Source: Thalia democratica
Lineage: Eukaryota
Assembly: GCA_965202585.1 (NCBI GenBank)
Contig: OZ241827.1
Span: forward strand, 45,632,001-45,696,000
Direction of reading: 5' to 3'
DNA: 64,000 bases
Every line of letters starts with the position of its first letter. Positions within the stretch are counted from its first letter, which is position 1. Positions 2,551 through 61,200 of this stretch are shown one piece after another. Made by a program: the position numbers and the translations under genes. A model generated the notes under the pieces. It saw only the letters and a list, made by a program, of their open reading frames with translations. It had not been told where the DNA came from and searched no databases.

Positions 2551-4081
2551 AAAAATAATAGAAAACTCAACTTTTGCTTTGAAATATATTCATATTAGGT
2601 TCATAAAATATCTAAATGAAAATGCAAACACTAACAAAAGTTTTAAATTACAAAATTAAGAATTTTATAAGTTAAACAGTTTTTAATGTAAATATTCTTT
2701 TTTTTTTAATCTAAAAAAAAATTATATGGAAGAAAAATTAAATAAAATTTGAATTTTCATTGGTTGTTTATTAAGTATATGTTATATTTCTGCAAAGCAA
2801 CTCAGCAATTTAAATAAGATTTTTTTTCTTTTTCTAAACTTGATTTTTCTTTTTTAAAGTTTAAAAGTTTAATGTTTTGGTTTCGAATTTATATATTTTA
2901 ATTCAGAAAATAAGACTGATGTTTTATGCCTAATGATAATAAATAAGACAAATAGTTTTTTTGTAGGAGTACCTAAACTTTTTTGTTACAGTAGTTTTTA
3001 ATTAATTTTTTTTAATATTTGTTAAATATTTATTAATATAAAAGAATACTTTAGTTTTTTATCTTGGTACAGCATTTAAAATAAAACGGAATATTATTTT
3101 TCTAAGATTGCAAACAAAAAATGCGTGTTTTTACAAGGTTTTCAAAGACAATACAATTCTTCTACAAAACAGTTGATTAAAAGTATTAGTTAACAAGTAT
3201 ACAATAATCCTAAATTAAACTGTAAAAATTATTTAGAATTGTTAAAACAAGATCACAGCATTTGTTAGATCGTCAATAGTAAACTTTTTCAAATGTTTCT
3301 GTAACAAATTAAAAAAAATAATATATTTAATAGCAAATTAATAAGTAAATTACATATACCGAAAAACTTGATTTGTTTTATATAAGCATATTTTTATAAG
3401 ATGCTTGATTGGCAGGGTTGACCGAATTCTACAAACTTAGAATTTTGAATACTAAACTAAGTGTTTTTATTATAATGTTATTCAAGAGAAATTTAATGGC
3501 GATTTCATTTTAGAAATATGGTAACTATATTAGTTCAAACTGTATTAGACAATAAATAAATAAGTATATTGAATACGGAAACGAAAACGCTCAAATAAGT
3601 TTTTGTTTATAGCCTAAAATACCTCTCGGTCATCCAGTCATACGTCACAATGACATAGATTAATTATAAATAGCAAAAAAAAAAAAACTTTTTTACTTTT
3701 AATTATTAACCTCTGAAGAAATAGAATTACAGTTAGTATTTGATAAAAACGTGACAAAATAGGTAAAATAAAATAAACTAAATGAGACAATTTAGTTAAC
3801 CATAAATATAATAATTAAAAAATAATTAAAAAATAAAACAAAAAGTCATGTAGACTATCAATACTTTTTGGAAATATGTCAAAATGTAGACTGTAACAAT
3901 TGAAAATTATATAGTTTTAGATGTTTTGCTCTGGTACAGATTTTTAACATAATTCTTTTGAATTTTAATATTTTGTGCGTATTGAAGCATGTAATAACTA
4001 AGGTTTATGATTATTTCAGCAGTTGAAAATTTGCAGAGCTCAATTTACTAACTAAGTTAAATAATTTCTTTTTAAAGCTGT

Positions 4082-4480
4082 ATGGCTGATGAAAAATTAA
4101 CTGAAGCTTTAGAAAAACTAATCCAAAACACAAGCAGTTTGTCTAAAATAGTTTGCAATTTTGAATCATCTTCACAACCAGTGCTAAATTCTACTATAAA
4201 CAACATTGTGCTTGGCCTAAAAGAGGTTGATGAATTAAAATCTCACTTTTCTGAACCAAAACACCAACTACCTAACGAAGTTTTCAACTACATTGACCAA
4301 GGCAAGAACCCATCTTTATACACTAAAGACTGTGTAAAAAACTCATTGCAGAAAAACGAAGAAGGAAAAGGTAAGATAGAACTGTTCAAGCAGTTTAGTG
4401 ATAGTCTTCTGAATCAAGCAGAAAGTGTTTACCCACAAGAAGTAGCAGAATACAAAAAATCAAGAAACAATGGATACTAA
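4082..4480 (+). CDS. MED10: Mediator of RNA polymerase II transcription subunit 10 (132 aa, intronless)
   Basis: The ORF aligns by eye over its full length with the Med10/Nut2 family (VFNYIDQGKNPSLYTKDC...KNEEGKGKIE vs human VFEYIDQGRNPQLYTKEC...KNEQVKGKID). Length is typical of the family. Confidence 0.95.
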   Translation: MADEKLTEALEKLIQNTSSLSKIVCNFESSSQPVLNSTINNIVLGLKEVDELKSHFSEPKHQLPNEVFNYIDQGKNPSLYTKDCVKNSLQKNEEGKGKIELFKQFSDSLLNQAESVYPQEVAEYKKSRNNGY

Positions 4481-7400
4481 TAATGAAAACAGTATGTCCA
4501 ATACTAACCATACTACATCTAAGGAGTTGGTTAATAAAAGTGAAGATTTAAAAAGTACTTCTGGAACAAAAATTAAGTTTGGGTTGAAAAAGAAAGAAGT
4601 ATCAAAAGTTGACCAAAACAAAGTTATACAAATTGAAGAAGAACCTAATACTAATGATGGACAAGCATCAAGTGAAGAAAAGGAGATTAAACCTATACCA
4701 ATGATAAATAGAAACAGGTAAGTAAGAAGAATTTATACTATATATAGTTATTGAACCTAAACTATATGTAATATAATAATTGTTTATTTATAGTATTCTA
4801 AAGTATAGTAAGGTCATCAAGGTTTAATGACCATAAGGTATTTCTCTACGCAAGTCCATTGATCATATTTGTTAGAGTTAACATTTGACAGTATCTGTTT
4901 ACAATATTCAAACTGTTTTAATAATAAAAAAATGCTGAGTTATTTAGAAGTAGATTACCTCACACTTGTCAGTATTTTATTTTCTAAAGATTGTAAAAAA
5001 TTATCAAGTTCTTATTCTTAAGTTATAACCTAACAATTGATTGATCACGTAATTTCAATTATTACAGTTTTATTTACCATAACATTACAATAATGGGGTT
5101 TTAATTTATTTTAAAAGAGTTAAAAGATCATAGTGCAGGCTGTTATTTATTTTTTTACAAATATTACAACTTACATTAAATCTTAACAAGGTTGTCACTT
5201 TACCTGGAAACCTTAAAAAACCTGGAATTTGAAAATTTAGGCAAAAAAAAACCTTGAATATTGAACAAAAATCACTAAAAAACCTGACAAAACCTGGAAC
5301 TTTAACAATTTTAACATGTTCAGTAGTAAAATTTCAATTTGACTCATAAAATCTATCATAAAAAAAAATTTCATCATCAAACATTTTTTCTGTTAAAAAA
5401 CACATTTAAGTATATTAAGCTTTACAATATATTTTTAATTTTTTAAACTATTGAACTTAGTTTCCTTACCTTTAACTTAACTTTAAACTAAATAGACCCA
5501 AAAATGTGTAGTTTTAAAAACCTGGAGGAAATTTAGAAAACCTGGAAAATTTTTTGAAAAAACAATTGGCAACCCTGTCTTGAAATATTGAATAAACACA
5601 GGGTTTCCACACGCTCAAGATCTTTTGAAACTTATGAAAATTACAGGATGACTCAGGATATTATATATTTTTTAAAAACTCAGGATGGCTCATGCCAGTT
5701 TATTTATTTTTTAATCAGAAAAGTTTAAAAATTTTTTGAAATCTCATGAATTTTTTTTATATATTTTATATGAGATTAAGATGATTTATTTTCAATGTTT
5801 TGTTATTTTATAACAAATTTTGTGGAAGAATCTGATTTTTATTGATTTTGTTGAGTTAAAAAATATTTTAAAGGATTTGAAAAAAATTAGGATGACTCGG
5901 ACTGTTTTTTGGCTCAAAAATGATATCCCTGTGAATAAGATTGTTTAAGGGTATAGGTATGGTCCACCTTGTTTTTTACAAGTTGATCTTATTTTGTAGA
6001 ATTATTTTAGCTACCAAAAAATTTTAATCACAGGGTTGCCTCACACTCAGGTTACTCATGACATTTTGTAGTTTTTGAAAATTTTGGGACAACTCAGGAT
6101 ATTTTGGATTTATTAAAAATTCAGGCTAACTCAAGATTTTTTTTTGTTGAAAAACTCAGAATAGTTTTTGGTTTTTTCTCAGGAAAGATGTTTTTCAAAA
6201 AATAAACAAGTACCTCCTCATAACTTTCAATGACGCACAATGTATTTTTGTCATAATTGCCGCATGTAATAAAATCTAGCCTCTAAGGTTGCATTTTTTG
6301 GGTCTACATTGGGGTGGTTTTCAGAAAATCAAAGTCTTAAAATCATCTTAATATGTACAGGGTGTTTTTGTGATAATTGCAAAGTGTACAAAAATTTCCA
6401 GCTGAAAATTTAAAGGTCTACTGTATTTTTAAGTAACCTAATGTTTATATATCAAAAGCTAATAAACTTTTATCTATGAATTTATTCTTTCAAGACTTTA
6501 TTTTACAAACTAAGTTTTGGTCAAAGACTTCGTCAGTGCTTAAATAAATGTTATTCAAAAGAATATTCAAATATTTATTTAAGCACTTACGAGGTCTTTG
6601 ACCAAAACTTAGTTTGTAAAATAAAGTCTTGGAAGATTAAATTCATTATTTCTCCTCTAGTAGTTTAGATCACTTTATTTGTTTTATAAAATCATAAGTT
6701 ATAAAACTTTTATCTATTTTAAATATTAGAAAAACTGACTCTTATAATTTATATTTAAAGTTTTAATATAAGATCTAATGTTAAACTTTAAAAAAATGTT
6801 CTTACTCCCCTATGTCCTGAAAAAGTTATTAAAACTACAATAATATTGTGATATTTTAGCACTACTAGAACAATCTTTAATTTAACAATATTTTCCTTCA
6901 TAACTTTTCATACAAAAATAAAACAAAACGCATTTAATTATTATTATTTCTAATCACCTATGACCAAGACCTATGAAAAATTGTATTTTAGTTAATTAAA
7001 CTGACATAAAATTATACTGTAGTCAGAATATTTAAAGTTTATGAAATATAAAATAACATAATAATCTAGTGTAGTATTAGACTTAAAAATTTACAAAGTG
7101 CTGAAGCTAAAAAACCCATTACTGTTTACTATTAAAACTTGTTAGATTTAAAATCAAATCAAATTGGTTAATTATTACTGTAAGTGTACACTGTTGGTTA
7201 ATTTTAGTTTTATTTAAAATCTAACAAGTTTTAAAAGAGTTAAAAATAGATAAAATTAAGTATTATATACTAACTATTTATTTCCTCTTATATTTTATTA
7301 GCATTTTTAAATAAGTTTTCTCCTTCTAATTAATATAAAACTTAATATATTCTGTATAAAAGAAAGTTTTAAAGCTTTAAATTGAAATATATTTGCTTTT

Positions 7401-10400
7401 TTTTCTTTTGTTTTTGTCATTAATATTTTTTCAACTTACAAAATATATGTTCTAATTGGTTTTTTAAGTATTGCAAAATATATATTTTAAAATTTAAAGT
7501 CTAGCTTAAAAATAAATTACAAAGTAGATAAGTTTGTGTAAGATATTAATTTTATAAGATAGTTAGCAATGAAAAGTTGTAGTCAATAAAATTTGTTTCC
7601 AAAACTTTTACAAAGACTACTTTATCTCAAAAGGTCATTGAAATTATTTTATTATATAAAATCTAACTTATAATTCATACTCAAGCTTTCAATAAATTTA
7701 AAAGCAAATCTTAGTTTTTGTAAAAAAAATCTGGACATATCTATGTCAATAAATAAAGTTACATAATATATATTGCAGGGTTCTGTTTTATTGAAACTCA
7801 GTATTTTTGTGTTTTTTACTTCAATTGGTCAATTTTTATTTTTACAGTTTTACAAAAGGCACATCCTTCGTAGTTTTGCTTAAAAAGTTTTACTAAAATG
7901 TGTCCAATAATGAAAAGAAAAGCTTATAAAATTATATTTTTAAATAATTCTCAGCTGTAAATATAAGAAAATCTACTTGCTTTCTTAAATTTTAATTTAG
8001 TTTTTGATTTTTAAATATTTTACGTAAACTAAGGCTAGTTCAGGCCACTTGTCGGTTACTTCTGCAATTTTTATGTTGTTATGAATTTGAATTTATATAC
8101 ATATTTTTATTGATCCAATTAAGAAAACATTTGCCAATAAGGTACAAATTAAAAATTTATCTTTGCTTCTTTCCTTATTTTTTCTATAGTAGTTAGAGAT
8201 TGTTTATAAAAGGTTGTAAAACTTTAAAAACAGTAATAGTGCTAATTGTGATAGTTAGTAAACTTCTTGACTTTGCTGATGATAGCAAAATGATTTTCAT
8301 TAAGTTAGTAGCTGATAAAGTCATGTATTAACTACAGTCTTTTATTGAAACCAACAATGTCAACAAATATGATGAGTTATAATGTTGCATCAACTTTTCT
8401 TAAAAAGTGGTTGCTTAATTGGTTAAGTAAGTGCCAGTCTAACCCGCTTGGTTAGACTGACACAATGGTTCATTTTGAAAATGCCTTTTTGATGAGTCTA
8501 ATGGGGAATACCAGGTCACATATGTTGCATGGATCTTTGTTATACTGAAATTCAGTTTAGTGCTAAACCTTTATGATATAGGCTAATTAATTTTTGTAAA
8601 AGTTCTAGTATTATAGATTTGTTGGAGCTTGATAGCATCTTTAGAGATTGTCTTTTATCAGAGGACTTTTTGTTATAAATTTTGCGTAATATTTTTAATG
8701 AATGTTTATGAAAATTTAGTTTCTTTAAAAAATAACTTAAATCATACTTTTTCTTTTTAATTTGAATCTGTATCTGTTCTGATTTTAGAAAAAGTCAAGA
8801 TCTGGCTAATTCCTTGGTCTTAGCAAAAAAGGCCTGTAGTTCTTTTAACTTATGTAAAAATTTCAAATTGTTTGTTTAGTATAAATTTTATTTTGTAAGT
8901 CTAGAACTATTTAAAAGTGTAATTATTGTAGTTTATTAATAAAAACGCATTTTTGTTGTTTTATATCTATTTAAAAATATATTGACAAAATATAGAGTAA
9001 ACTTCTTAAGATTTTTTTAAGTTGCATTGCAAATTTTGGTTTCATTGCACAAAATTTTTTTGACTTAATGACATTGTTTTACTACTTCCAATCACCACTA
9101 ACAGTTAAATTTTTATAAACAATTTATTTTGTTTTGTTTATAGCAAGCCAAAATGTTGACAATTCATAGTTACCTTGACCCCAACATACAAACTTTTATA
9201 TTAGTATACAAAAGTACTTTTGAAAAAAATATAAGAAAATAAATAAAAAGATTTTCATGTTTCTTACTATGAGTCTAGTTTTACATTAATACTATAAAAC
9301 TTTAAAAAAACAAACTTGTTGTATGTTTGGTTTAGAGTTTTGTGTACATTGTGTAAATACATTCTTTTTAATGTTTAAAGATATAAAATTATTATATAAT
9401 TATAAAAACAATAAATTAATTTAATTGTTATTAAGGCCATAGGGGGGGGGGGGGTCCAACTTTTTTTTTTTACAAAAAATAACTTTGGCTTTTATATGAA
9501 AACTTTAAATACAAACTACAAGCCTGTTTTTATAGAATTTAAAAATATCATTTAACTTTTGAGATATTTTATTTTTTGTAAAAAGTTTCCGATGCAAAAG
9601 TATAGACCGCAAATTTTTCGTGGTCAATTTTCTCGGAAATTTTAAAACTTACTAAAAATCTATCTCCTCCTTCATTTTTTGACCTAGAGACTTCAAATTT
9701 TCAGGAATTGTTCCTTTTAATATTTTGAAGAATCTGAATGTTGGAATTTTTGAAATTTTGAAAAATAAAAATTTTATCCACAAAAAACTAAAAAAAAGGG
9801 TAGTTTTTTGACAATAATTTTTTTTTTACTCAAAATTAAAAATTCCTACAATAGATCTCTTTAAAGTTTAATGATACACATTCTGTAAAAATTTGAGAAA
9901 GATTACTCAAAACATGAAGGAGGAGATAGATTTTTAGTGAAATAGTCTTTTTTCCCATTTTTAGTTTTCGCCTTCCATAAGGAACCTATTGAACGCCCTT
10001 TCTTTGATCGCTTATATCTCAAAAGTTACTTTGAGTTTTTTTAAGCGGTTAAAAGTGTCTGATAGCTCAGATTAAATTCTACAAAATAAGATCAAGTTGT
10101 AAAAAACAAAGTGGACCCCCCCCTAAACTAAATAATTAGTTTTTATAAGAACTTTTAAGGTTTACTATAGTGTAAAATTCTTATTTATCACACGTTTGCC
10201 ACACACTCAGACTACTCAAGGTTACTTATAACTAGTTCAAACTTTTTTGAAAAACTCAAGCTGACTCCAGCTTGTTTGTGTTTTTTTTTGCAAAGCTCAG
10301 AATAGTTTTGATAATTTTTGTAAACTTTATGCTAGTATATTATATTTATATAAAAGATTTATTAAAAAAAGTTTTAAATGAATATTTTTAACAGGTACAA

Positions 10401-13400
10401 AACAACAGTTGAAGATTCCTTAACCGATGAATTGTCAGCTGAAGCAGCAGCTGAAATAAAAGCTGAAGCAAAGAAACGCTTAGAAGCTCCTACTGAAGAT
10501 GAGGTGTTTAAACAATTGTTTAAAATCTTAAAGAACAATTGAAAACCATTTTTGACTATTGACTAATGACTATTTTTTCAATAAACAATTTTCTAAGATA
10601 TTGTCACAAATTACATTTTTTTTAAATGTGTTGGAGTTATTAGTAAATAGTTGACACTGACTTTTAAATGTTTACATAAAATCTTTATAAGACTTGTTTA
10701 CAGGCTTCATTTTTTATTCTTTTAATAGTACACCATTAGTTAAGGCTTAATATAAGACACAAGCATATATAAAACTTATTGTGCTTTTTAATGAGTTTAT
10801 TTATTACCAAATTGTTCCTGCTTTTATTGCTATATCCTCTATAACAGTGGTATTAATTATTTTTCAAAGTTGTCAAAGTAAATTACTAAAAATTAAATAG
10901 TGTGCACACAAGACTAAACAATCCCTAAAAATTACGTTTTTTGCTTGGTGATTGAAATTTGAAAGCCAAAACAGCGAAACCATTTTTTTTTAATTAAAGT
11001 ATTTGTAATCTCAGTACAAAAATATGAGTCTGTTGCCCAAGTAGCAGATAAAAATTTTCCCTATCTATATTAAATACAATTTATCTGAAGTTTGCTTATT
11101 TAACTAAAACTAGAGATTAAAAACTCTCGGACTTCTTTATTATTTATCTTTTGTAAACCTCTTATTAAGATGTGCTTATAAACGTTTAATGACATATTTT
11201 ATCTATGTACCTTAAAAATATGCTCGTAACGTTTAAAATTTATTGTATTTTTTGATAATTTCCCTATAAATTTGCTTTATTTTATGGATTTCCCTATATA
11301 TATTTTTAAAGTTTTAGTGGGAACCCTGTTTAAACTTAATTAAATAAAAATCTAGTTGTAAATTTTTTAGTTTCATTTATAGTTGTATAAATAAGTTGAT
11401 ATAAGGCCAAGGGGGTATTGTCATTAAGTTAAGGGAAATAGAGCTTTTTCACAATTTAGTCTTATTTTATTGAGTTTTAAATAAGTTGATTTTTACAGAT
11501 TTTTAAAACTCAAAATAACTTTCAGAGATATTGCCAGTCAAAGTCGGAGATTACAATATGTTCCTTGTGGGAGGCGCAAACTAAAACGGCAAATAACTAG
11601 ATGTAAAGAATTTAAAATTAAACATTTTATGACAAAAAAAAACTTTTTTTGTTTGCTTTTTTAATAACAATATTATTTTTTATTTAAAAAAATTGTTCTG
11701 ACAGAATTTTCTATAAAGTGCAATAAGCATTTCTCAAAAGTTTGAGGTATTTATCTCAAGAAGATATATTTTTAGTGAAATAGTCTTTATTCCGTTTTAG
11801 TTTGTGCCTCCCATAAGGAACCTATTGTTGCCTCCGACTTTGACCTACTATACCTCAAAAATTATTTTGAACTTTTAAAGTTTTTAAAAAGCATCTTGTA
11901 GCTTAGTTAAAACTCTATAAAGTACAATCAAATTGTACAAAAAGTGATTTACTCCTATATTCCCTTAAAAAGGCTATATGGGGTATATATATAAAGTATG
12001 TTGTATTTTGTTTTTAAAGCTTCAAATAGTAATTAAACGTAAAAAACTACGTAAAAACGTTTACATCCACATAAGGCTTTTGTTATTAATAAATATTCTG
12101 AAACTTTTAAAAATAAATGTAAAAGCCCTGTAGCTATATTATTAGAAGAAAAAGTCCAAGGTAACATTTTAATAATTCACCTGTAAATTAAGTTTTAATC
12201 AAAACTTTTGTGTTATTAAGGCTATTTTTTCTCAAAGATCAGTAATACAATAGTTACTATTTTAATTTCTTTAAATTTTTGTCTATCACTACTTCGCTTA
12301 GTTAATACTTTGTAATTTTTACTTACAGTTATTAGTTTTTTTGAAGAAAATACAATACTCTTTATAATTTTAAAACTAAGTTTCATTAGGATAATATTTT
12401 ATCTCTGTTCTTTATTTTACATATAAAGCTTAAAATATTGGAAAACATGCAGTCAATATAAATTTTTTTTTAGGAATTAGATTTAACTGTTCCAATACTG
12501 CAAAGAAACAAAGTTCCTGAAGGCTTTGAAAATGGACGACTCCTTGATGTTTCAATAAGGCCTGATAATGTAAGTTTAAGTTGGTTTTATTGTTTAAACT
12601 TTAAACCATAGTATGTACTTGAAATAAAAAAAATCAAACAGTTTTTATAGCTATAATTCTAAACATCTATTGCAACTTATTACTATACTTCTAGAGAGCA
12701 TAAACTAAGGGCTAAATTTTGTAGCTTGACCCAAGTTAATAGTTATAATCATACTGATCATTATAAAAAATATATTTAAAGCTTAAATCTTAAATAATTT
12801 AATTTTCAAAGTTTCATAAAATGGTAGACTAATGGGTCAAGTATAACTCTTTAATTGATTTACATTGCTAAACTTACGACAAAAAACCTTATTAGCAAAT
12901 TATGTTGAAACTTTGACTGTTTTATAGTTTTAGTTTGTCCAAATAAAACAGTAATTTATAATTTTATGAATGTGTACTTTTTGCTTCTCATTCTAAATCA
13001 AGCAGTTGAAAAACTTGACAGTTTCAGCTAAAAATAAATTTGGTTTAAAACTAAATAAGTCTAGTGAAAGAAGCAACTTTTGTGTATAATTATCTTCTGA
13101 AATTATTTGTTTAGTTTAAATTAGTACTACAAAGTTTTGTCTAAGAGCAAAAGTTGTCATTTGTTTTATAACACTTTATTTTTAAATTAAGCTTTTCATC
13201 TTCGCTAAAAAGAGTTTAGAATAGAGTAGAATAAAAAATTATTTGTAAATTTGAAATAACTGCCTTTAAACTTTTTATTATATTGAAGAGCACTGGTTAT
13301 TTAATTTATAATCATATAATTAGTAAATTTAAAGTATAATGTATTGTAAACCTGGTTTAAGGTAAAAAAAAAACTTTTAAATATTTAGTTATGGCTGACA

Positions 13401-15338
13401 AAAACTTTATTTTCTTGAAAAATTTGTAAACATGTAAAACAAATCTATCTAGCACAATAAGCAAATTCAGAAATACATAGAGGGGTTGTTTGCTAACACT
13501 TTTTAGTTAAAATCTATAAATAAAACTGTTATAATTTTCACTTTATCCTGAAGCTTAACCTATTTAAAGTTGGTAATACAATATTTAAACATTTTTTATT
13601 TTGCATTAAATACACAATAACAATCATATGTCGTAACTGTAGCCCGACGAAAACGATTACAACCAAGTCAAAATAGAAAACTTCGGTACTGCGCTGCTGC
13701 TTGGCATGGGCATGACCAAAGACAAGAAGATCGGGAAATCGTTCCAAGAGCGAGTCGTACCTGTGGACGTTCGCAAGAGGCCCGCGGGACTCGGACTCGG
13801 CGCCAACGCTGCGATGAACCCCGATTCGAAAGGCAAGTTGCGGAAAGAAGACAAGTTGAACGTGGGAGACTTCGTTCAAGTGGTGTACGGGATAAACAAG
13901 GCGAGTTTCGGGGAGGTGACGGGGTACGATGCCGACCTGGGAAGACACGACGTCCTCCTACTGCCCCACCCTCGCAAGTCCGCTACCGTGAACGAATTTT
14001 CGTTGAAAAAAGTCTCCAAAGCCGACTACTCGAACGAAGAAAGAAGGATAGAGGAAGAGGGCAAGCCTAAAGTGGGCGAGAAAGCTGCCAAGAAGCGCAA
14101 AGACAACGGCCACGCTCACCCTGTTTCGTCGAAGAAAATTAAGAAGGAGCGGAAGTGGGTTGAAGCTGAACTGAGAGTGAGGATAGTCGACAAGAAGCAC
14201 GACTATTACAAGGAGAAAGCTGCTGTTGTCGATGTTCAGTACGATGGCAGTTGCACTTGCAAAACTAAAAACGGCCGCTTGATCGATCTTCACGAGTCCC
14301 AGCTGGAAACTGTCATTCCAAAGTTAGTTTGAAATAATTGTTTTTGACTTTTCAATAAATACTTCGTGATTTTATTAAGCATAACCAATTAGTTATATTG
14401 TTTATTAGTACTATTTTAATTGATCTTGATAACTTATTATAAATCGAAATTGATACGTGTTTTATAAACAAGTATGAAATAATGCCAGGTTTCATACATT
14501 AAATAATTACTTGAAAATAATTTTTTTTTGTTTTTATAAAAATAGATTTTAAGCAGTTTATGAACTTTATATGAGTTTTTATCTATAAAATAATTTAAAT
14601 ACTAAAATCGTTAAGCAGAAGCTCTATAAAAATTACTTAAATAAACAAGTCACGAGCTTTTTTGTACTAAATTTTCATTATTAAAAGTTTTTATTGTTTT
14701 CTTAGTTAAATTAATATTATAATAGAAATTAGATTAACCTTTTTTAACCAATAATAGTTTAATCAATTTAAAAAAATTTAAACTTTGCAAGTTTTATAGC
14801 ACTAATTGAATGTTTAAGTTGATCTATTTTTTACTGACAATAGTTTTTTTGATGTACATAGAGTTAGTTTCACGTTTCTAAATTCTTTATATATTTTAGT
14901 AATTTTTTATATTAAAAAAAATGTATCAAAGTTTTTCCTATAAAAAAATTATATTTTATAAAGTAAGCTATCACTGAAAATTTTATTGAAATTATTGAAC
15001 TACTTATTGAAAAAAATTATTGAACTACTATGAAAATTAAAATTAAGATGTACTGCTCAAAATGTGTACTAAATGAAGATTTTTCTTATTTTGTATATAA
15101 CTTGAAATTTTATGCTGATAAAACTTAATTTTTTAGATCATCTGACAAAGATGTGTATGTCAAAATAACCGGAGGCAGCCGATCTTCTAGAGGACGTTTA
15201 GGAAAAATTTTAAGCAAAGACAAAAGAAAAGAGAAGGTAAATGTTCAGTTATTGGAAGACAGAGATCAAGTGTTAACAATTAGTTTTGATGATGTTTGTG
15301 AATATCTTGGTAGTGTTGAAGACCATCATGACTATTAA
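4470..15338 (+). CDS. GPKOW: G-patch domain and KOW motifs-containing protein (Spp2/MOS2 family splicing factor), 5 exons, 444 aa from ATG 4470
   Basis: Exons 4470(or 4494)-4717, 10395-10503, 12474-12569, 13643-14322 and 15137-15338 join in one frame (1335 nt, all GT-AG). Family motifs seen: IKFGLKK N-terminus, IPMINRN, G-patch FGTALLLGMGM...RPAGLGLGA, KOW regions WVEAELRVRIVDK and KITGGSRSSRGRLGKILSKDK, C-terminus FDDVCEYLG. Confidence 0.92.
5187..5577. mobile_element. CAGGGTTGCCA-type MITE (hAT-like termini) with internal ACCTGG repeats
   Basis: Ends CAAGGTTGTCAC and TGGCAACCCTG, many AAACCTGG subterminal repeats, near-identical flanks TCTTAA and TCTTGA. Confidence 0.7.
5599..5931. mobile_element. 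CAGGGTT-terminal MITE with ACTCAGG repeats; related partial copies at ~6030-6190 and ~10195-10320
   Basis: Starts CAGGGTTTCCAC and ends ATCCCTG. Repeated ACTCAGG/ACTCAAG motifs are shared among the three loci. Confidence 0.6.
5949..6003. mobile_element. Terminal fragment of the same TTAA/GG family
   Basis: TTAA|GGGTATAGGTATGGTCCACC...TTGATCTTATTTTGTAGAATT is the reverse complement of 10075-10116. Confidence 0.7.
6477..6645. mobile_element. Foldback MITE with 73-bp arms
   Basis: Arms 6477-6549 and 6573-6645 are reverse complements with 4 mismatches. A second, half copy sits at 112-177. Confidence 0.85.
8040..8700 (+). mobile_element. Highly degraded CR1-like reverse transcriptase fragment in GPKOW intron 1
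   Basis: Frameshifted remnants appear in the expected RT order: FRPL/SVTSA near 8040, a KTFANKV segment resembling KAFDKV near 8125, and FADDSKMI at 8271. Confidence 0.45.
9435..10127. mobile_element. TTAA-site, GG-terminal non-autonomous DNA transposon (Kolobok-like)
   Basis: Starts TTAA|GGCCATAGGGG...GGTCCAAC and ends GTGGACCCCCCCC. Has an internal inverted segment (ATCTATCTCCTCCTTCAT / ATGAAGGAGGAGATAGAT) and shares sequence with 11433-11964 and 5949-6003. Confidence 0.7.
11433..11964. mobile_element. TTAA-flanked non-autonomous DNA transposon (Kolobok-like), same family as 9435-10127
   Basis: TTAA on both sides, GGGAA...TTCCC termini, and a shared internal segment TTTTTAGTGAAATAGTC...CCATAAGGAACCTATTG. 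Confidence 0.7.
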
Positions 15339-18300
15339 GTTTCTTTTTTTTTTACTTGTGTGTTTTGTTTTATCCGTACCAACTTTATTAAAATTGTACA
15401 TAGTTTTTTGAGTTTAGTAAAATTGTAATTTTCATGTCAGTTGATGTAAATATACATTTTGTTTATAATAATAATATTTGATATATCTCAAATTATTCTA
15501 GTTTTGAAATGTTTTTTTTTAGCTAAGTTTCTTTTTCAAAAATCTTATTAAACTAATTTTATACTAAACTACATGTTGAATTTTTTTCATGTTCTTTACA
15601 ACTGTTTCCTCAGAATTATAGTAATTTAAGTAGATAAAAAGTTTTCAAAGAATTTTTAAGCACATGTCTATGTGTTCATTAGTTTTCATAAAAAATTTAT
15701 TTAAAGTGTTGAATGGATTTAAAGTTATTTTCACACTATTATAATAAAAAAGTAGAATGATGTCTAAAATAGATATTTCCTTTTAAACACACTAGTAGAT
15801 AAATTCTCAATTATGAGGTGTTATAGTCCAAAAAAGCACAGGAATTAGTAATAGAAAATATGGGACTTTATTTTTTATTTTCAAGGAATGACTTCAAACT
15901 TATATTCTTATCATTAAATTTTTGTTTTTACTAAAAAAATTACAGCTAGTTATTCACAAATTTCAACGATAGCTTAGATATAAATGCAAAGTGAACTATT
16001 TAAAAATTATTGGCTATAAGTTAAATAAAAAAATAACGTTTAACAAATTTTTAGTTTTATAGTTTTAACTCAAATTTAAAAAAAAAACGTCGGCCTTCGG
16101 CATTAACGCAGGCATATCTCGTGTTATTTTTGTATTGGTAAAAAGTAGCAATTATTTTGCGTAAAATATACCCTTGCTACATTATTTAGTAATCTTGCCC
16201 TCCATACCATGTTTGTCTATAGTATTAATATTTAAAAATTACTAGCTAATAGTAAGTACAGTTCCTAACGAAACCAGCTCGTTGGAATATACAATAATAA
16301 CAACAATTTTTCTTTATTTAACCAATGTACGTTTCTCCTAGTTAATTGAACTTTTGACAGCTCTGTGAAACTGTGTTAACTGTTTTACACAGAGAAAATT
16401 ACATCAGTTGAATAAAGAAAAGTACTGTGCAATATTTGTTATTTTTATCTATAGTACTGTTAAAGTATTGTTTTCAAATTATATAAGTAAGAACACGTTA
16501 CTTAAGAGATAGTTATGTGCATTAAAAATTGTTAATAGTAGTTTCGTGTTAAATTATTTTTATTATGTTTAAAAGTTTTTATTACCTAAAAAACTATTAA
16601 GAAGTTTGAAATAAAAGAATTTTACATGTTAATCTATATATTGTTAACAATATTTGGTAAAAAATAAAAGTATTCTACCGCCAGTATTCAACTAACATGC
16701 GTAAACTTTCAAAATAATTGTTGTTAAAAATGTATATAAAGTTTACCAGCAAATTATAACGTAACAAGGCGTTAAATTCCAGAGATCAAAAAAATCAGAG
16801 TAATTAAAAATCAAAACAACTGTATGCATTTATTATATTGTCTAACGCGTTTCTCTGCTTTGGAAATATAAACTGCTCTACGGAGTCTATAAAAGATTAA
16901 CGTACATTTAAATAAGCATGTGAAAATATGTGTTGAAAATGTACTCTATTAACATATTTTTAGTAAAAAAGCAGGCTGTAATATTTGTCTATACTGTTTT
17001 ATCCTATTTATTTTATTAAGGAAAAATAAAAAGATCAAACTAGACTATGGTGCTATTAATAGTGATGCTCATACGAACACAATTAAAATAAGTTAATGTT
17101 CGTTTTTCCACATTTTTTATCTTACGACTTTTTTTTACTCCCAGATGAATGTTTATAATATACATACTTGATAAATAAGCATATAACTTTCATGCTTTTT
17201 TAATATATAAACTTTTACCGACTCCGTTGAGCTCTTAATATTTTATGAGCTTTGATCTATAAACGCTGTTTTTATTCTTTCCAAATGTATATTATTTTTG
17301 GTATATGGCCTCTTCAACACTTTTTAAGATTTTGAATTCTCGGAACTTGAACTGTCATGAAAACATTTAGTTATTCTAATTATGTCTTAGAGTTGTCTGG
17401 AGCTATTGTTCCAAGTTGTCAAAAATAAGAAGATAAATTAAAGTTTTTGATTAGTTGACTTTTTATGTTGAAATTATTTGGTAAGCTCGTTTATTAACAT
17501 ATACTAAAATAGATCTTCAAATCTGTGTCAGCTGCATTTTAAACAGATAAAAATTTTCAATACAAAAAAGTTGTAAAAAAGCATAGTTCTGGAGCTGCAT
17601 CAAATTTCAGCACCATATAAATTATAAAAGAAGTTTCCGAATTTATACATTGAAAAATGTACTGGATGTAACGTTTACCCTCTGTGTTGAACTTTGTAAG
17701 ATCAACCCAGTGGTCAACACATATACAAAGAAACTTTCGAAGCCAAAAGTTTTAAAGGGCATTACTTTAAAAAAATGCAAAATCTTATATGCGATTTATT
17801 GACAATTCTTTTAGTAATTATTCATTAAAAATTTAAACATCTTTTTTACATATGATTGTTTATTTATTTCAGGATACCTTAAAGTATCTAAAGAAAATGA
17901 AAGCTACCTATCTTATCTACATATTACACTAGAATTTTTTTTTAAGAATTAATTAACTTTGTTTTTTGATGTTATTACTATGTAAATAAATAAAAATGTG
18001 CAAATTATTTTTTTTATTTACTACCAGGTTTCAGTGGCAAAAAAAACGACCTTTTCAAGTGTAATAGAATATTTAATTTGCACATATTTTATTTGAATAA
18101 GCTCTTTACATTTCAGTAAATTGGGCAATACTTTTTAGCTAAGACAAATAATTATATACTATTTAAATAAGAAAATATGTAGCTAACAAGTTACATGCAA
18201 GATTTAGATTTACTGATAGCATAAACTGTGTAAAAACTTTTTATAACTGAAAAACACTCATTATAGATAAATTTAGCATTCACTTAGTAAGTCAAATTTT

Positions 18301-33560: not shown

Positions 33561-34281
33561 GTCAAAGAAAGCGATGTTTCTAATACTGTATGAATGTTAT
33601 TATAAGTTCTCATTTTTGACTATAAAGTTTGTTGTAGAAAGTAAGAATTTTAATAGCTTAATTATTATTAAAGTTGTATTGTTAAATATACACCTTATGA
33701 AAAGACAACATACAAACAGTTGCATGTTTAGACAACATTAGTTTTAAGTTATTAAAATAGTTATTATTTTACTTCGCTATTAATTATCTTACAAAATTAG
33801 AGAAAAAAAAGTTTTTTTGAAATAAGTACTGCATGTAAATGGTATTTAAAATTTTTTTATGCTTTTGCTATTGTTTTTATTTATGAAAAACCTAAGTTTT
33901 ATTGATTTCGAAATGAAATAGTTCTACCGAATAATCACTAATTGCGCTATTTGATAAATCAAATTGTTTAATATACGATAATTTTTATTAAATATTTTTG
34001 CTGGTAGAATTTTTTAAATTCTGAACAGTTTTATAATTTTTTGCAACATATTAAAGCTTTTATGACTTTTGTATGTAAAATTAAATTCCTACGCTAAGTA
34101 TAGAACTTAAACTATTTGATAAAAATGTTAAACGGAAAGCAGCATACTTAGGAAATTTTTACTGTTTTAACTATTTGTTATTTTGTTGCAGAATCTATAC
34201 AACAATAGTTTTAGCTATCGAACCACCTTACCATACTAATTGCACTGCCTTTATTTTATTTCAACTGCCACAAAGAAACGA

Positions 34282-37200
34282 ATGGAAAACGATGAAACGA
34301 GAATTTTGTGCGTTAAGTCTGTGCTGGAGTCGATCATCGCAAAGGTCTGTTTAGATTCCAACGAAGAAGAAGAATCAAGCAACCGCCTTAAAATTATCAG
34401 TCAAGAATACAGTAAAAAACTCAGTCCAGAGAAAAGTCAGGAGAGTTGTTACAAAAAGCAGCAGTGTGATGAAGATGCAAGATCGATCGAGGAGTCGCAG
34501 ATGACGATCAGAAACCTGCTGAAATCTCTCGAATTTCAGGAAGAAGAGTGCGACAACGAAGAGGAGGAGCAAGCTCTCAACTTGTCGTTCAACTCCACGT
34601 TCAGCTCGATGTTCGGCAGGTCGGACAAGGCCATGCCACACAGAAGAAGGTTTTATTCGTACGACCACCTTCCGAGGCTCGGCGAAAGCTGCAGCAGACA
34701 GTGTCTTTCGAGAGACAGCAGGAAGTTTTCCACGAGAACGCTGAACGAAGAAATAACTGTTAGCTCGTTGCAGGTAAACGAAGAAGACCAAAAATGCGCA
34801 TTTAATGTTGGAACGTTCCCTCGAAAAGACAAAACTACAAACGGTTAGTTTTGAGTATCTGTAAATACGTTTGTAAGTTTGATGGAGTTAAATTATTTGT
34901 TTTAAATATGACTAAAGGAGTTTAAAAGAATTTAAAAATATTTTTTATATTGAAATTTAGTGATAAAACTAGAAAACTAGTAATGTGAAAAAGTTGTTTA
35001 GTTTTATATCTTGAAACATTAAAATTTTCAATGCCAAACAAACAAGATAAAATATACAATTTATAAAGTTCTAAGATATGTTATGAAACGTTTGATCTTA
35101 AGTTTTTAAGTTAGATATTATAAAACAAATTTCTTAACAACATTTTTTCCTAACGCTCAACTAAGTTGAAATATTTTTTTTTCGTTTCATAAACAAAGTA
35201 AATGTCATTAGTGCTTTCACCTGTAATATGTCATTAAGAATAATACAAACTAAATTATAATACACCCTAAAACGTAGTTGCTCTGCCTTAAAATCAATTA
35301 AGCTTTTACTATTGTCAGATTAAACTTGTTTCATGTGTTCAATTAAAATTAGCTTAATTTTGGTTCGATATATATAAAGCCATTTAGGCAATGATTTTTT
35401 TTTTCACAAAATTAATTGAGATTTTACTTATACTTTGTAAATTATTTTTTACTAGTCTTAAAACTAGATATTAGTTTACAAAATATTTCCTTTTTTATCT
35501 AAGGATGTATCGAAGACTAAGAAAACTATCGAAACTATGCTATTGATATTTGATTTTATTAGCTTAAAGTAGTATTCGTTGCAGACTATTTTTTATGTGT
35601 AAGATAGTATATTTTTGTTAAACTACATAAAAATTACTCAAATTTATAACAGCTGATGTAAATAAATCAAGTTCATTGACAGCAATGTCTACTTTGTTCA
35701 AGGAGTTTTCAATAAATCAATCAGAGCTTGTTACTCCACGACAAATCAAAGAAATTCCAATTGATCTACTTCATTCTGGAATTGCAATATTATCAGGTTA
35801 AAAAATTTAATAAAAAAAAGAAAAATATACAATGGCGTTTAATTTTTTTTTATAAGTCATTTTAAAACTTAAAAATCTTTGATCAGACCTGAAAAAAAAA
35901 ATTAAAACAAAATTTAAAAATACTAGTTAAATAGTTAAAAATATTGGTTATAAGTAAAGTAGTGAGATTGACTTTATAATTCCTAGAAACAATAAAAAAT
36001 GTTAAAAGTTAATTTCTAAGCTGACAATAAGCTTTAAATCATTATTAATAAATAATCTATTTAAATTTACCTATGGTATTATTGTGTTTATTTTATAACT
36101 TAGCGTCATTGAATAAACAAAAGCATTTTACAGAATATTTATAAATCGTTACTTATAACCTTTTAACTAGTCTAAACAAAAAACAAACAAACATTTAGAA
36201 AAATAAATGTTTAAAACTAACATTAAGTGTACATATTGTTTGTAAAAAAATAAGTTTTTATCAAAACAAATCTTAAATACAAGTTTTTTTTTAACATTTA
36301 AAAACTGGCATTAAAAAAAGGTATTTTTGAGTAAAAATAATTTAGTATCCTTTAATCACTTTTTAGGTGACCAATTTTTTAAAAATCGCAACAACATTTA
36401 TTAAATTGTCATAGAAAAAGGAATAATTCCTGCTGTAATGTTTTATAATTTTCTTGATACCTTAAACTGCATTGAAATCAATTTTAGTAACTCTACTGTT
36501 TATATACCTTTAAGATACTGTGTAATACAGCATCATATAAAAACTGTAAATGTTGATACAATTAAATTTGTTTGGAAATTTTCAAGGTTTAAAGTGTTTT
36601 ATTTATAATAATTAGTCTAAGTTAGTTATTTTGGTAGAACTTAGTTTAAAAATTAAATAGTTTAAATCAAAATACAACAATTTTTTTTTAGATGTATTTA
36701 CTCAAGTACATTAATTTAAAAACATTCCCTAGATATATGGGTGCTTGTAAATTTATTTATAAACTTTTTGATCTGTACTAATGAAAACTTGTAACCTATT
36801 TTTATAAAAAGTAATTGGTTGAAGATAAAAGTAAAAACATAAAATAAATGTACAAACATTTTTCCAAAAAAAAAATAAACAAAAAGTGAAAATCTAGTTA
36901 TATGATTATTTTTTAAATGCTAAAAAAAGCTTATTATAGTGTTTTTAATATGACTGCTAATATCTATTGTTCTCTACATGTATTAGAAAAAATGTATATT
37001 CTGATACCTTTTACAGTTGTCAACTACTTGAAATTTATACTAAACTTATTTACACTTATAGAAAACTGTTTTTAGACTTTTAATTAACAAGCTTTCCATA
37101 TGTTATTGAAATGACTTAAAGTATAAGTTATTTTAAAAGCGATGTGATAAACCTGTTTAAAACACACAATAGTTAGCTTGTCAAACAAATCGGTTTGTCT

Positions 37201-58200: not shown

Positions 58201-61200
58201 ATATTTTGAGTAAAAAAAAACACTCAATTTTTTTCCTTAGCTATTGCAAGCTTTGTAAACTTTACCCCAGGAAAAAGTATCAAGTATTAAACTAAGCATT
58301 TTACAAAACTAATGCCAAAATAATTACCCTGCTAACTTAAATTTCGTCTCCTATCGTTTCTGTTTACTATTTCCGAACTGTTCGACTAAAACCGCCTAAA
58401 AGGGGCGATATCGCTAACTTTTGAAATCCTGGTCTAAACTGATTAAAATTTTACTAAAACTAGTATCAAGAAGACGTTGTGTTGAAATAATTTAGTTGTA
58501 TCAACTTTTTTCGACTGACCCACAAACTGAAGCTCCAGGACAAAAGTATCTAGACCTTATTATCTAAAAGTATCTAGACCTATTTAGACTTATGACAGTT
58601 TATCGTGACTATGTCTGCCTGGTAAATCATAATGAGAACGCAACAAGTTGCAGAATGTCGTTTGGACTGTTTTAGTTTCTTTTAGTTATTTTTCCTAAAA
58701 GTCAGTACTTTTTGCTATCAGGGGACAACAACAAGTGAGGGGTAAAAAGTAAATGAGTAATTGACTAAAAAATAGGCCGATTCCTTCTCTATATTTCTGT
58801 CAAGTCGGCAGTTTGAAATTTAATCTTGAAAACATTGATTTAGTTCTAGAAAAAACTTTAGACACTGTAGTAAAAAGTTACAAGTGTCAACAAAACATTT
58901 TAGTATAATTATGTAACATTTTTAATGCTTATTTTTTTAAGTGACAATGTTAATTGATACAGAAACAGCTGTCTAAAAGTAAAGAAATTGTAAAAGAAGC
59001 AGAAGAATACGACAAGCTTGGTTACATCACAGTAGAATTGTCGAAAGTACAAAGTTTGGAACGTGTCATCTCAAAGTTAATGGTTGTTATGGATCAGAGA
59101 AAAAATGAAGTTGACGCGGCAGCAGAAATGTACAGATTTGTTGATCAGGTGAAGTTTTAAATAAAGTAACTTATAATTTATATAGTTTTTAAATGTTACT
59201 ATATGCCACTTAATGGCTTGAATAGTACGTAAGAAAAGTTCAAACTCAAAGAAACGTTATATTCAATATTTAGTATTTATAAGATTTTTAAGCAGTGATA
59301 GTATATAATTAATACTGAAGTTATTGATTTAATATAAAATTAAAAACAACTTTTGTTTTATAATAAAAGAAAACTGTCATTTTGTAAATTTACTTGTATT
59401 TTTTAGAACAAATATTTTCAAATCAAAAATATAAAAACGTGTGAACACTTATATAAAACAATTATTAAAACATTTATTTTATGGTGACAAAACCAACCAA
59501 TAAAATAATCGTACTGCGTAGATATTAAGTTAGTATAAAATTAACAACTCTTAGCAGGTTTAAGCTAAAAATACAGCACTAGTAGTTAGTGTAAATTTCT
59601 CAATTGTTTTGTTAGCAAATAACTTTAACGATCTTGTTTAAAAAAAAGTTTAAATTAATATTGTTTTATAAATATGCTTTGTACCTATTACTAATTATGG
59701 TTAAACAGATTTTAAAAAGCTTTCATGATAATAAAAACATGATCAAGAAAAATAAATCTGAAACATATTGATAAACTTACTTTTTTATGCTTCTTAAACT
59801 ATGAAAATGAGTTATAGTATTAATAAATATTAGTTGGACGTTAATTTTTTATTTGAAACGTACAGCATAAAGATCACTCAAGATTTGTTGTAAGGGTATA
59901 TTTTTCACATGTTTTTTTTTCTGACAGACCTATTTCTAAACTTTAATAAGATCTTTAAACCCGAAGTACTTAATTATAACACAAAACTATGACAACTATA
60001 ATATGTTTTGATTTGCTCAGTTTCACATGAAAAATAACACATGTTACTTCATGGTTGCAGGCGTATTCATGGGCACTTAATGGCATGAAGTTTGTAGTAA
60101 TGTTGAGTGTTGATGAGTGTGTCAACATTGATAAGTGCCAAGAAATGATCAACAAGTTTGATAATTACATGACACAACATCCCCCCATAACCGAAGTACG
60201 TTTTGTTATTAAAAAAAGGTTATAAGTCAAACTTTAAAGCTAAAGTTAAACGCTAGAGCCTAAAAATACCAACAAAATCTTATTTTATTTTTAATTATAA
60301 CAAGTGAGCACATAACACTTTTTTTATTGAAAATCTCTTATTAAATTTTTTTTGATAAATAGCTCATAAAAACTAAATAGATATTCTTATAAAACATAAT
60401 GATAAACTTTTTGTTAGGAAACTTTTAAGGAAATATTCACACTAGCTCGTCGCTACGGAAACAGAAATTGTATTCGGCAATGTGATTTCGCAGAACAGAA
60501 ATGCAAAGAAACACTGGAGCTGTTCAAGAAAAGAAGAGAACTGCTCGTAAAGGTAATGCTTAGTAAAAACATTATCTATACTAATATAACTTTACTTTTT
60601 TTTTTCTTCTACAGTTTTCAAAATTTTTATATTATTTAATGAGCGAAATCTTGACTTAACGGTTTGTCTGATATAGTTATTTTGTTTTTCAATGATCTTT
60701 TTTTTTGTCAGGCAAAACTGCAGCTTGTAAAGGCCAAAAAGCGAAGTCTGTCGTCTTCATTCAGAATGCGGAACCGAGACAGCTTGGATGCAAAAAGTAA
60801 AATAAGCTCTCCAAGTCTTAAACCGCAGGAACACGAAACAACAAAAGAAGAAAAAGAAAAGAACACATCAGCAACCATATCTCCTCCAAAAATAAAACCG
60901 ATGCTCCTCACTGAGGCAGGAAGGCGGAGGATCAGCATGCAGTCCGTGGAGAGCAAAAACTCATCGACCAGCGAAGACACCTCATCAGCAGGCGACTTGT
61001 CTGCGAACGGAACGCTGCGGTCGATGCGCGGGATTGAAAAAAAGCCAGAGTTTTGCTATGGGGGATTCCGCAACAGCTCTCTGCGCAAGTCGCAAAGCAT
61101 GAAGCTGTCGAAGAAGCCGGCCTTCGTCGCCAACAACCTGAACGCGAACCGGGCGTCTCAGGCGAACAGAAGGAGCATCGGGTCCATCGGAGTTTTGGTC

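Follow-up and report, generated by a model that had tools for sequence, protein, structure and literature searches.

A MED10-GPKOW gene pair with overlapping coding sequences, very probably a deeply conserved tunicate operon

The MED10 and GPKOW genes and their overlap

The window analyzed here, a stretch of 64,000 nucleotides (nt) of contig OZ241827.1, carries on its forward strand the genes for MED10 and GPKOW, and the end of the first coding sequence overlaps the beginning of the second by 11 nt. A preliminary description of this stretch had placed the MED10 stop TAA at 4478-4480, a first GPKOW ATG at 4470 and a second one at 4494, both in the +1 frame relative to MED10, and the sequence and the list of open reading frames (ORFs) agree with it on each of these points. 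The GPKOW model was built by mapping related transcripts onto the window, and the splice boundaries were then tested. The features of the locus are the following (UTR, untranslated region):

4034-4081, forward strand: minimum MED10 5' UTR, genomic and not a spliced leader; a 93% identical relative (contig L012) aligns from 4034
4082-4480, forward strand: MED10 coding sequence, intronless, 132 amino acids, stop TAA at 4478-4480
4380-4469, forward strand: final ~30 MED10 codons, in which synonymous variation is suppressed; they may hold leader or processing signals for GPKOW
4470-4480, forward strand: MED10/GPKOW overlap of 11 nt, from the GPKOW ATG (4470-4472) to the MED10 TAA (4478-4480)
4470-4717, forward strand: GPKOW exon 1 (coding), 83 codons, with a phase-2 donor AG/GTAAGT at 4717/4718
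4491-4496, forward strand: AG (4491-4492), T and second in-frame ATG (4494-4496); could serve as a trans-splice acceptor of the Ciona type and as a poly(A) site
4718-10394, forward strand: GPKOW intron 1, 5.7 kb, placed by exon mapping, with a repeated AAACCTGGAA motif
10395-10503, forward strand: GPKOW exon 2, from transcript mapping and the splice-boundary test
12474-12569, forward strand: GPKOW exon 3, from transcript mapping and the splice-boundary test
13643-14322, forward strand: GPKOW exon 4, with Pfam G-patch_2 and the start of GPKOW_C
15137-15338, forward strand: coding part of GPKOW exon 5, with the rest of GPKOW_C; stop TAA at 15336-15338
15339-15527, forward strand: minimum GPKOW 3' UTR; the alignment of L012 extends to 15527

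Both gene identities proposed earlier were borne out by the domain searches. The MED10 product matches the full length of the Pfam profile Med10 (PF09748; residues 8-125, E 5.3e-31) with 107.4 bits, well above the gathering cut-off of 23.3. The five-exon spliced model of GPKOW gives a protein of 444 amino acids in which G-patch_2 (1.3e-14) and GPKOW_C occur together, encoded by exons 4 and 5. This model is identical at 440 of 444 positions to the metatranscriptome protein P0188 (444 amino acids), attributed to the window's own species, whose N-terminus corresponds to the overlapping ATG; P0188 is known as a protein and its source contigs were not fetched. In an exhaustive search, the best homologue among named proteins was the GPKOW of Ciona intestinalis, and the GPKOW tree showed long branches and no resolved placement of the window species. 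According to the genome search, MED10 and GPKOW are each single copy in the 802-Mb genome, in which we found no retrocopies of either gene that could have kept a spliced leader junction or a poly(A) site.

The preliminary description had considered that this MED10 might be an untranscribed pseudogene. This is ruled out by its status as sole copy, by the clear predominance of synonymous over non-synonymous change (32 against 14 variable codons among four species) and by its presence in RNA. Since there is no other copy in the genome, the gene in the window is the organism's working MED10.

The last codons of MED10 are AAC AAT GGA TAC TAA, and the GPKOW ATG at 4470 arises from AAT GGA, in the context AACAATGG, 8 nt ahead of the MED10 stop. 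The ORF that begins there lies in the +1 frame relative to MED10 and is open for 83 codons up to the donor of intron 1, while the second in-frame ATG (4494) stands directly 3' of AACAG/T.

RNA across the junction and conservation of the pair in tunicates

Five metatranscriptome contigs from five ocean samples (L002, L010, L011, L012 and L013) present MED10 followed by an intron-free GPKOW, with the same 11-nt overlap. They represent three species besides the window's own, and their GPKOW sequences are 78-99% identical to each other. In addition, near-identical RNA was found in open-ocean metatranscriptomes. Run X6 (organism A, RNA-like, with contigs of only 47 M letters in all) contains 0.96 of the 31-mers sampled from positions 4000-4720 and 0.48 of those from 4000-5440, that is, the exonic half and essentially nothing of intron 1. 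Both halves are present in the DNA-like runs X5 and X7. Because X6 contains the words of the exons and lacks those of intron 1, it is RNA-derived, and it shows that transcript sequence crosses the MED10/GPKOW junction. It should be noted that all this evidence consists of assembled contigs and not of single molecules, and that overlapping mRNAs would merge in the same way. The preliminary description had proposed a single unit driven from upstream of MED10; the shared contigs and run X6 support the unit, and the promoter itself is what we infer. Taken together, MED10 and GPKOW are most probably co-transcribed from a promoter upstream of MED10.

With regard to the 5' end of this transcript, L010 contains 115 nt upstream of the MED10 ATG that, judged by eye, appear colinear with the upstream sequence of the window. 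Positions 1-7 of L002 read ACATGGG, which resembles the 3' end of a template-switch oligo. If it is one, the cap site would lie ~55 nt upstream of the MED10 ATG in the L002 species, and MED10 would carry no spliced leader there.

The junction AATGGATWYTAA is invariant in the window, L012, L013 and L010/L002, although the codons that flank it do change (N/S before, Y/F after). The indels in exon 1 of GPKOW (3, 27 and 3 nt) are all divisible by three, and in each species compared the reading frame stays open from the overlapping ATG onward. The ATG at 4494 is present only in the window and L012; likewise, the AG at 4491-4492 is kept only in L012 and is absent in L013 and L010, two species that have no other in-frame ATG ahead of the conserved KIKFGLKKK. 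This N-terminal I/KxFGxKKK motif of GPKOW reads KIKFGLKKK here, ISFGFKKK in Ciona, and ISFSFKKK or LSFGFKK in Oikopleura-like species. As judged from these alignments, the overlap is more than chance, because AATGGATWYTAA does not vary, the indels come in threes and two species offer no alternative ATG. By the same comparison, with the frame open everywhere, ATG 4494 of restricted occurrence and no substitute in L013 and L010, ATG 4470 is the putative ancestral initiator of GPKOW in the window clade.

L002 carries a frameshift that corresponds to a one-base difference in an A run with respect to L010, which belongs to the same species. Several metatranscriptome contigs differ by one A in homopolymers near the junction (L002 ~541-575; P0197/P0200 and P0204/P0194). 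One such variant shifts the GPKOW N-terminus and leaves an ORF of 367 amino acids from the methionine of PIPM; another shifts the MED10 tail and gives a product of 152 amino acids. These variants could be assembly errors or real.

The gene pair was also observed at greater evolutionary distances (SL, spliced leader):

Ciona intestinalis: intronless MED10 of 131 amino acids, then 87 nt up to GPKOW, with the acceptor TTATTTTTTAAG followed by TTTCAATC ahead of the ATG
Oikopleura RNA contig L003: last 21 nt of the O. dioica SL, MED10, 11 nt without AG, GPKOW
Related appendicularian, contigs L004-L009: TAATG overlap, in RNA and genomic contigs both
Another pelagic tunicate, L070: 5-nt spacer between MED10 and GPKOW

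The O. dioica SL matched in L003 was taken from 10.1101/353979. In Ciona, the boundary between the two genes reads TTATTTTTTAAG/TTTCAATCATGG, a canonical acceptor. Across four pelagic lineages, the distance from the MED10 stop to the GPKOW ATG lies between -11 and +11 nt, and no AG occurs between these two codons in L003, L070 and L005. The adjacency, for which a search in related species had been suggested, holds then in Ciona, in the Oikopleura-like species and in L070; in the annelid Owenia and in lamprey, no MED10 was found within 10 kb of GPKOW. On this distribution, MED10-GPKOW is an ancestral tunicate gene pair, with a spacer that would have shrunk to -11 nt in the window clade. Its retention in every tunicate lineage sampled is unusual, because even the cryptic species of O. 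dioica are reported to share few conserved operons (10.1101/2023.05.09.539028), and the pair is for this reason a candidate operon held together by selection. The arrangement had been presented as an oddity among animals. This view does not hold for tunicates, in which about 20% of the genes lie in operons, often without intercistronic DNA (PMC1488885, PMC4122922); moreover, the pair itself is found in Ciona.

As for the neighborhood of the pair, MED10, GPKOW, a PTE-domain gene, SPT5 and a kinesin lie close together on one strand of the Oikopleura-like genomic contigs L006-L009, and they may belong to a longer operon. A polybromo-like gene begins 336 nt after GPKOW on the same strand in Ciona (L069).

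The genome search also revealed a spliced leader of the Ciona type. The 16-nt Ciona SL is ATTCTATTTGAATAAG, as PMC7986045 and PMC1488885 confirm. With GT behind it, and with at most one mismatch allowed, it was counted 1,048 times, against 22 for the reversed control. SL RNA gene candidates were located on contig C26, with a tandem spacing of 15,085 nt, and at the starts of contigs C9 and C10 (L054-L056, L061, L062). In them, the 16-nt SL is preceded by a conserved block rich in G+C and followed by a GTAAGT donor and a hairpin AAGGAAgcaaTTCCTT; the Ciona Sm motif AGCTTTGG is absent from them. These copies are probably true genes for SL RNA. The genome lacks the 40-nt Oikopleura SL. The presence of the Ciona-type SL, the absence of the Oikopleura one, a GPKOW nearest to that of Ciona and the occurrence of the RNA in the open ocean indicate a non-appendicularian tunicate, and the window genome is probably that of a pelagic one.

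Approximately 1,000 exact SL+GT copies are dispersed with unrelated flanks (for example L046-L053, L057-L060 and L063-L068). In L050, L053 and L068 a short leader and an ATG-initiated ORF follow, as in retrocopies of trans-spliced mRNAs; in L051, L057-L060 and L066, hammerhead-like cores (CTGATGA...GAAAC) follow, and L051 and L066 are head-to-head inverted pairs. Within the window, an SL-like 16-mer with one mismatch (ATTTTATTTGAATAAG) lies at 18086-18101. The window holds two SL-like matches with at most two mismatches, 0.35 being expected by chance, which is probably insignificant.

How the overlapping pair could be expressed

Three traits of a tunicate operon resolved by a spliced leader were found here: same-strand neighbors with a tiny or absent spacer (the 11-nt overlap), RNA across both cistrons (in assemblies) and SL RNA encoded in the genome (candidate genes, by sequence). 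We consider with high confidence that the unit is a tunicate operon of deep conservation; its nearest known counterpart is the spacer-less Ciona type. Like the C. intestinalis SL operons without intercistronic DNA (Satou et al. 2006, PMC1488885; 2008, PMC2760879), whose 16-nt SL is the one in the window genome, it is a spacer-free same-strand pair with dicistronic RNAs, and composed of the same two genes. However, in Ciona the UTRs abut and the coding sequences are 87 nt apart, whereas in the window the coding sequences overlap by 11 nt, the boundary has no visible T-rich acceptor and no single cut gives two complete mRNAs. The operons of O. dioica (Ganot et al. 2004; Denoeud et al. 2010, as cited in PMC4122922 and PMC7986045) also have short or absent spacers and include the MED10-GPKOW pair, with MED10 carrying the SL; they differ in having their own 40-nt SL, absent from the window genome, and in belonging to compact genomes, in contrast to the 802 Mb observed here with a 5.7-kb intron right after the overlap. 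In the SL1-type operons of Caenorhabditis elegans (PMC1488885) there is no intercistronic space either, and formation of the upstream 3' end competes with downstream trans-splicing. Theirs is a nematode system with canonical AAUAAA signals. In the alignment of the window clade, no conserved AATAAA was found in exon 1. To our knowledge, overlap of coding sequences has not been described for the SL1-type operons.

Tunicate operons and spacer-less operons were thus already known; the overlap of the coding sequences and the conservation across tunicate classes are what differs here. We found no paper describing a MED10-GPKOW operon. For the spacer-less Ciona operons, it was left open whether one transcript yields both mRNAs (PMC1488885). 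Since overlapping coding sequences do not allow a single cut to give two complete mRNAs, the processing must be mutually exclusive or the translation bicistronic, and the MED10-GPKOW unit offers nature's own clean test of the way in which operons without spacers are resolved.

We tentatively favor the explanation that GPKOW is expressed by SL trans-splicing, with a weak acceptor that lies at the 3' end of MED10 or just within it. One primary transcript, driven by a promoter upstream of 4034, would contain the intronless MED10 followed by the five-exon GPKOW. The SL would be trans-spliced at CAG 4446-4448 or AAG 4462-4464, ahead of ATG 4470; the window species would have a further acceptor, CAG/T at 4492/4493, ahead of ATG 4494. 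The SL-GPKOW joint would then read ...TTTGAATAAG joined at 4449, 4465 or 4493. Polyadenylation in Ciona operons occurs at the G of the downstream acceptor AG (PMC1488885), and use of 4492/4493 would leave MED10 with its stop and a 3' UTR of 12 nt, while GPKOW would begin at Met9. Each primary transcript would give either a MED10 mRNA (not trans-spliced, probably a long bicistronic RNA) or an SL-GPKOW mRNA, never both, because the mature mRNAs would need to overlap. The shared promoter, the use of any of these acceptors and the mutual exclusivity are what we infer; Ciona operons are mostly without intercistronic DNA, and mutually exclusive cistron products have been proposed for them (PMC1488885). 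Trans-splicing is the default for tunicates, and the orthologous Ciona pair looks built for it. In the window, the arrangement CAG/T-ATG at 4492/4493 fits the Ciona rule exactly, yet it is derived, because it is common only to the window and L012.

Several observations weigh against trans-splicing. This mechanism had been put forward in the preliminary description; it is realistic, given the Ciona-type SL of the genome, but none of the recovered contigs shows the SL joined to GPKOW. Among 21 cluster members, no N-terminal extension derived from the SL was found, in a search blind to acceptors that put the TAA of the SL in frame. The contigs of full-length GPKOW proteins (those fetched and the longest for each protein) measure ~1.8-2.5 kb, which is a bicistronic size. 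The fraction of T upstream of the junction acceptors is 0.14-0.23 (0.23 for AG 4491-4492), compared with 0.32-0.50 at the gene's own cis acceptors. Furthermore, any acceptor ahead of ATG 4470 cuts MED10 before its stop and destroys the MED10 message, and only the window and L012 have an in-frame ATG behind the acceptor that comes after the stop (4492). An exact 18-mer scan of metagenome contigs, in a collection without the JGI metatranscriptome contigs, gave chance matches only.

The recovered MED10-GPKOW contigs, all of them bicistronic and spliced, bring forward a second explanation that is quite possible, namely a mature bicistronic mRNA, with no need of trans-splicing. MED10 would be translated from the cap-proximal AUG, and GPKOW by leaky scanning or by termination-reinitiation at the AUG located 8 nt ahead of the stop. 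It should be noted that assemblers merge overlapping mRNAs and drop SL tips, so that the contigs are no proof of a mature bicistronic mRNA. The initiation contexts agree with leaky scanning: in the window, L012 and L010 a T at -3 gives the MED10 AUG a weak context, and all four species show a purine at -3 and G at +4 around the AUG of GPKOW; however, the MED10 AUGs of Oikopleura-like species have a strong context. MED10 has no internal Met, and the two out-of-frame ATGs of the window's copy each meet a stop within 2-3 codons. In the Oikopleura-like MED10 coding sequences the start is the sole ATG in any frame (codon-order shuffle, P 0.001-0.002), whereas in the window clade the depletion is non-significant (codon-preserving shuffle, P 0.5-0.8). 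The depletion in the window clade is not distinctive, because the MED10 of Ciona, with its canonical acceptor, is ATG-poor as well (10 per kb against 31 per kb in GPKOW); as a proof of leaky scanning in this clade it was therefore downgraded.

As regards reinitiation, the short stop-to-start distances in the four pelagic lineages, and the lack of AG there in L003, L070 and L005, are in line with bicistronic translation. On the other hand, reinitiation after an ORF of 132 codons is normally inefficient. Bicistronic mRNAs read by leaky scanning or reinitiation are known from viral UAAUG systems and from polycistronic genes of green algae and fungi. The window resembles them in its stop and start a few nt apart, its AUG-poor upstream ORF, and its weak upstream and strong downstream AUG contexts. 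It differs from them in lacking a TURBS-like motif, the 18S-complementary element expected within ~90 nt upstream (no UGGGA, that is, no TGGGA in 4380-4480, and no conserved structure upstream), and the SL system of the organism makes such a mechanism unnecessary. That GPKOW is made from a capped bicistronic mRNA by leaky scanning or reinitiation, and that translational coupling is why the pair stayed fused across the sampled tunicates when the majority of tunicate operons lack such conservation, seems to us rather unlikely.

Another aspect to mention is the end of MED10, where synonymous variation affects 3 of 32 codons, compared with 29 of 100 upstream (Fisher P 0.03). The ratio of synonymous to non-synonymous change is 3:7 there and 29:7 upstream (P 0.005, with a cut-off picked after inspection of the data). 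This constraint indicates a function at the nucleotide level just upstream of the GPKOW start, and it is consistent with trans-splicing, bicistronic translation or an internal promoter alike. Its position just upstream of the restart site resembles that of reinitiation-promoting elements. No conserved RNA structure was found around the junction (-8.5 kcal/mol, no covariation), and an Rfam scan of the window gave zero matches. A core promoter or a leader could also explain the synonymous conservation in the last ~100 nt of MED10, in which case an internal promoter, within or upstream of the MED10 3' end, would produce independent capped GPKOW transcripts. We consider this improbable: adjacency and orientation are kept across tunicate classes despite the poor conservation of operons, which suggests that GPKOW depends on the promoter of MED10. 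Besides, every fetched full-length GPKOW contig carries MED10, and the recorded lengths of the others suffice to hold it.

A MED10-GPKOW fusion protein produced by a +1 frameshift at the MED10 stop had also been proposed, as had an alternative 3' splice choice; we regard a fusion, by frameshift or by alternative cis-splicing, as extremely improbable. GPKOW does lie in the +1 frame here, and UUU UAA in L010 is a conceivable slippery site; however, the window, L012 and L013 read UAC UAA, for which re-pairing at +1 is impossible. Besides, L070, L003 and L005 have GPKOW in the +2 frame, and in Ciona 87 nt separate the two ORFs. The frameshift was rejected since neither the slippery site nor the frame relation is conserved. 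The candidate donor inside MED10 (GGTAAG, 4369/4370) has phase 0 instead of the phase 2 needed by exon 2, and the corresponding joint appears in no contig, so that the alternative choice of splice site was discarded too. Mechanisms other than trans-splicing, bicistronic translation and an internal promoter have only a slight chance of accounting for the expression of GPKOW. Finally, a functional coupling between Mediator and the spliceosome, as suggested in the preliminary description, is speculation; the partners in tunicate operons are usually unrelated in function.

Other features of the window

The G+C content of the window is 21-36% in 2-kb windows, mostly ~25%. Coding exons at 13621-14067, 34240-34887 and 60655-61332 are markedly richer in G+C than their surroundings and open in several frames; the ORFs at 34240-34845 and 60655-61332 gave no Pfam match. 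Within GPKOW intron 1, positions 5190-5560 contain many copies of a AAAACCTGGAA-like motif. On the reverse strand, an open frame of 472 amino acids at 49011-50426 matches RVT_1 (6.9e-35) and corresponds to a LINE-like retroelement fragment.

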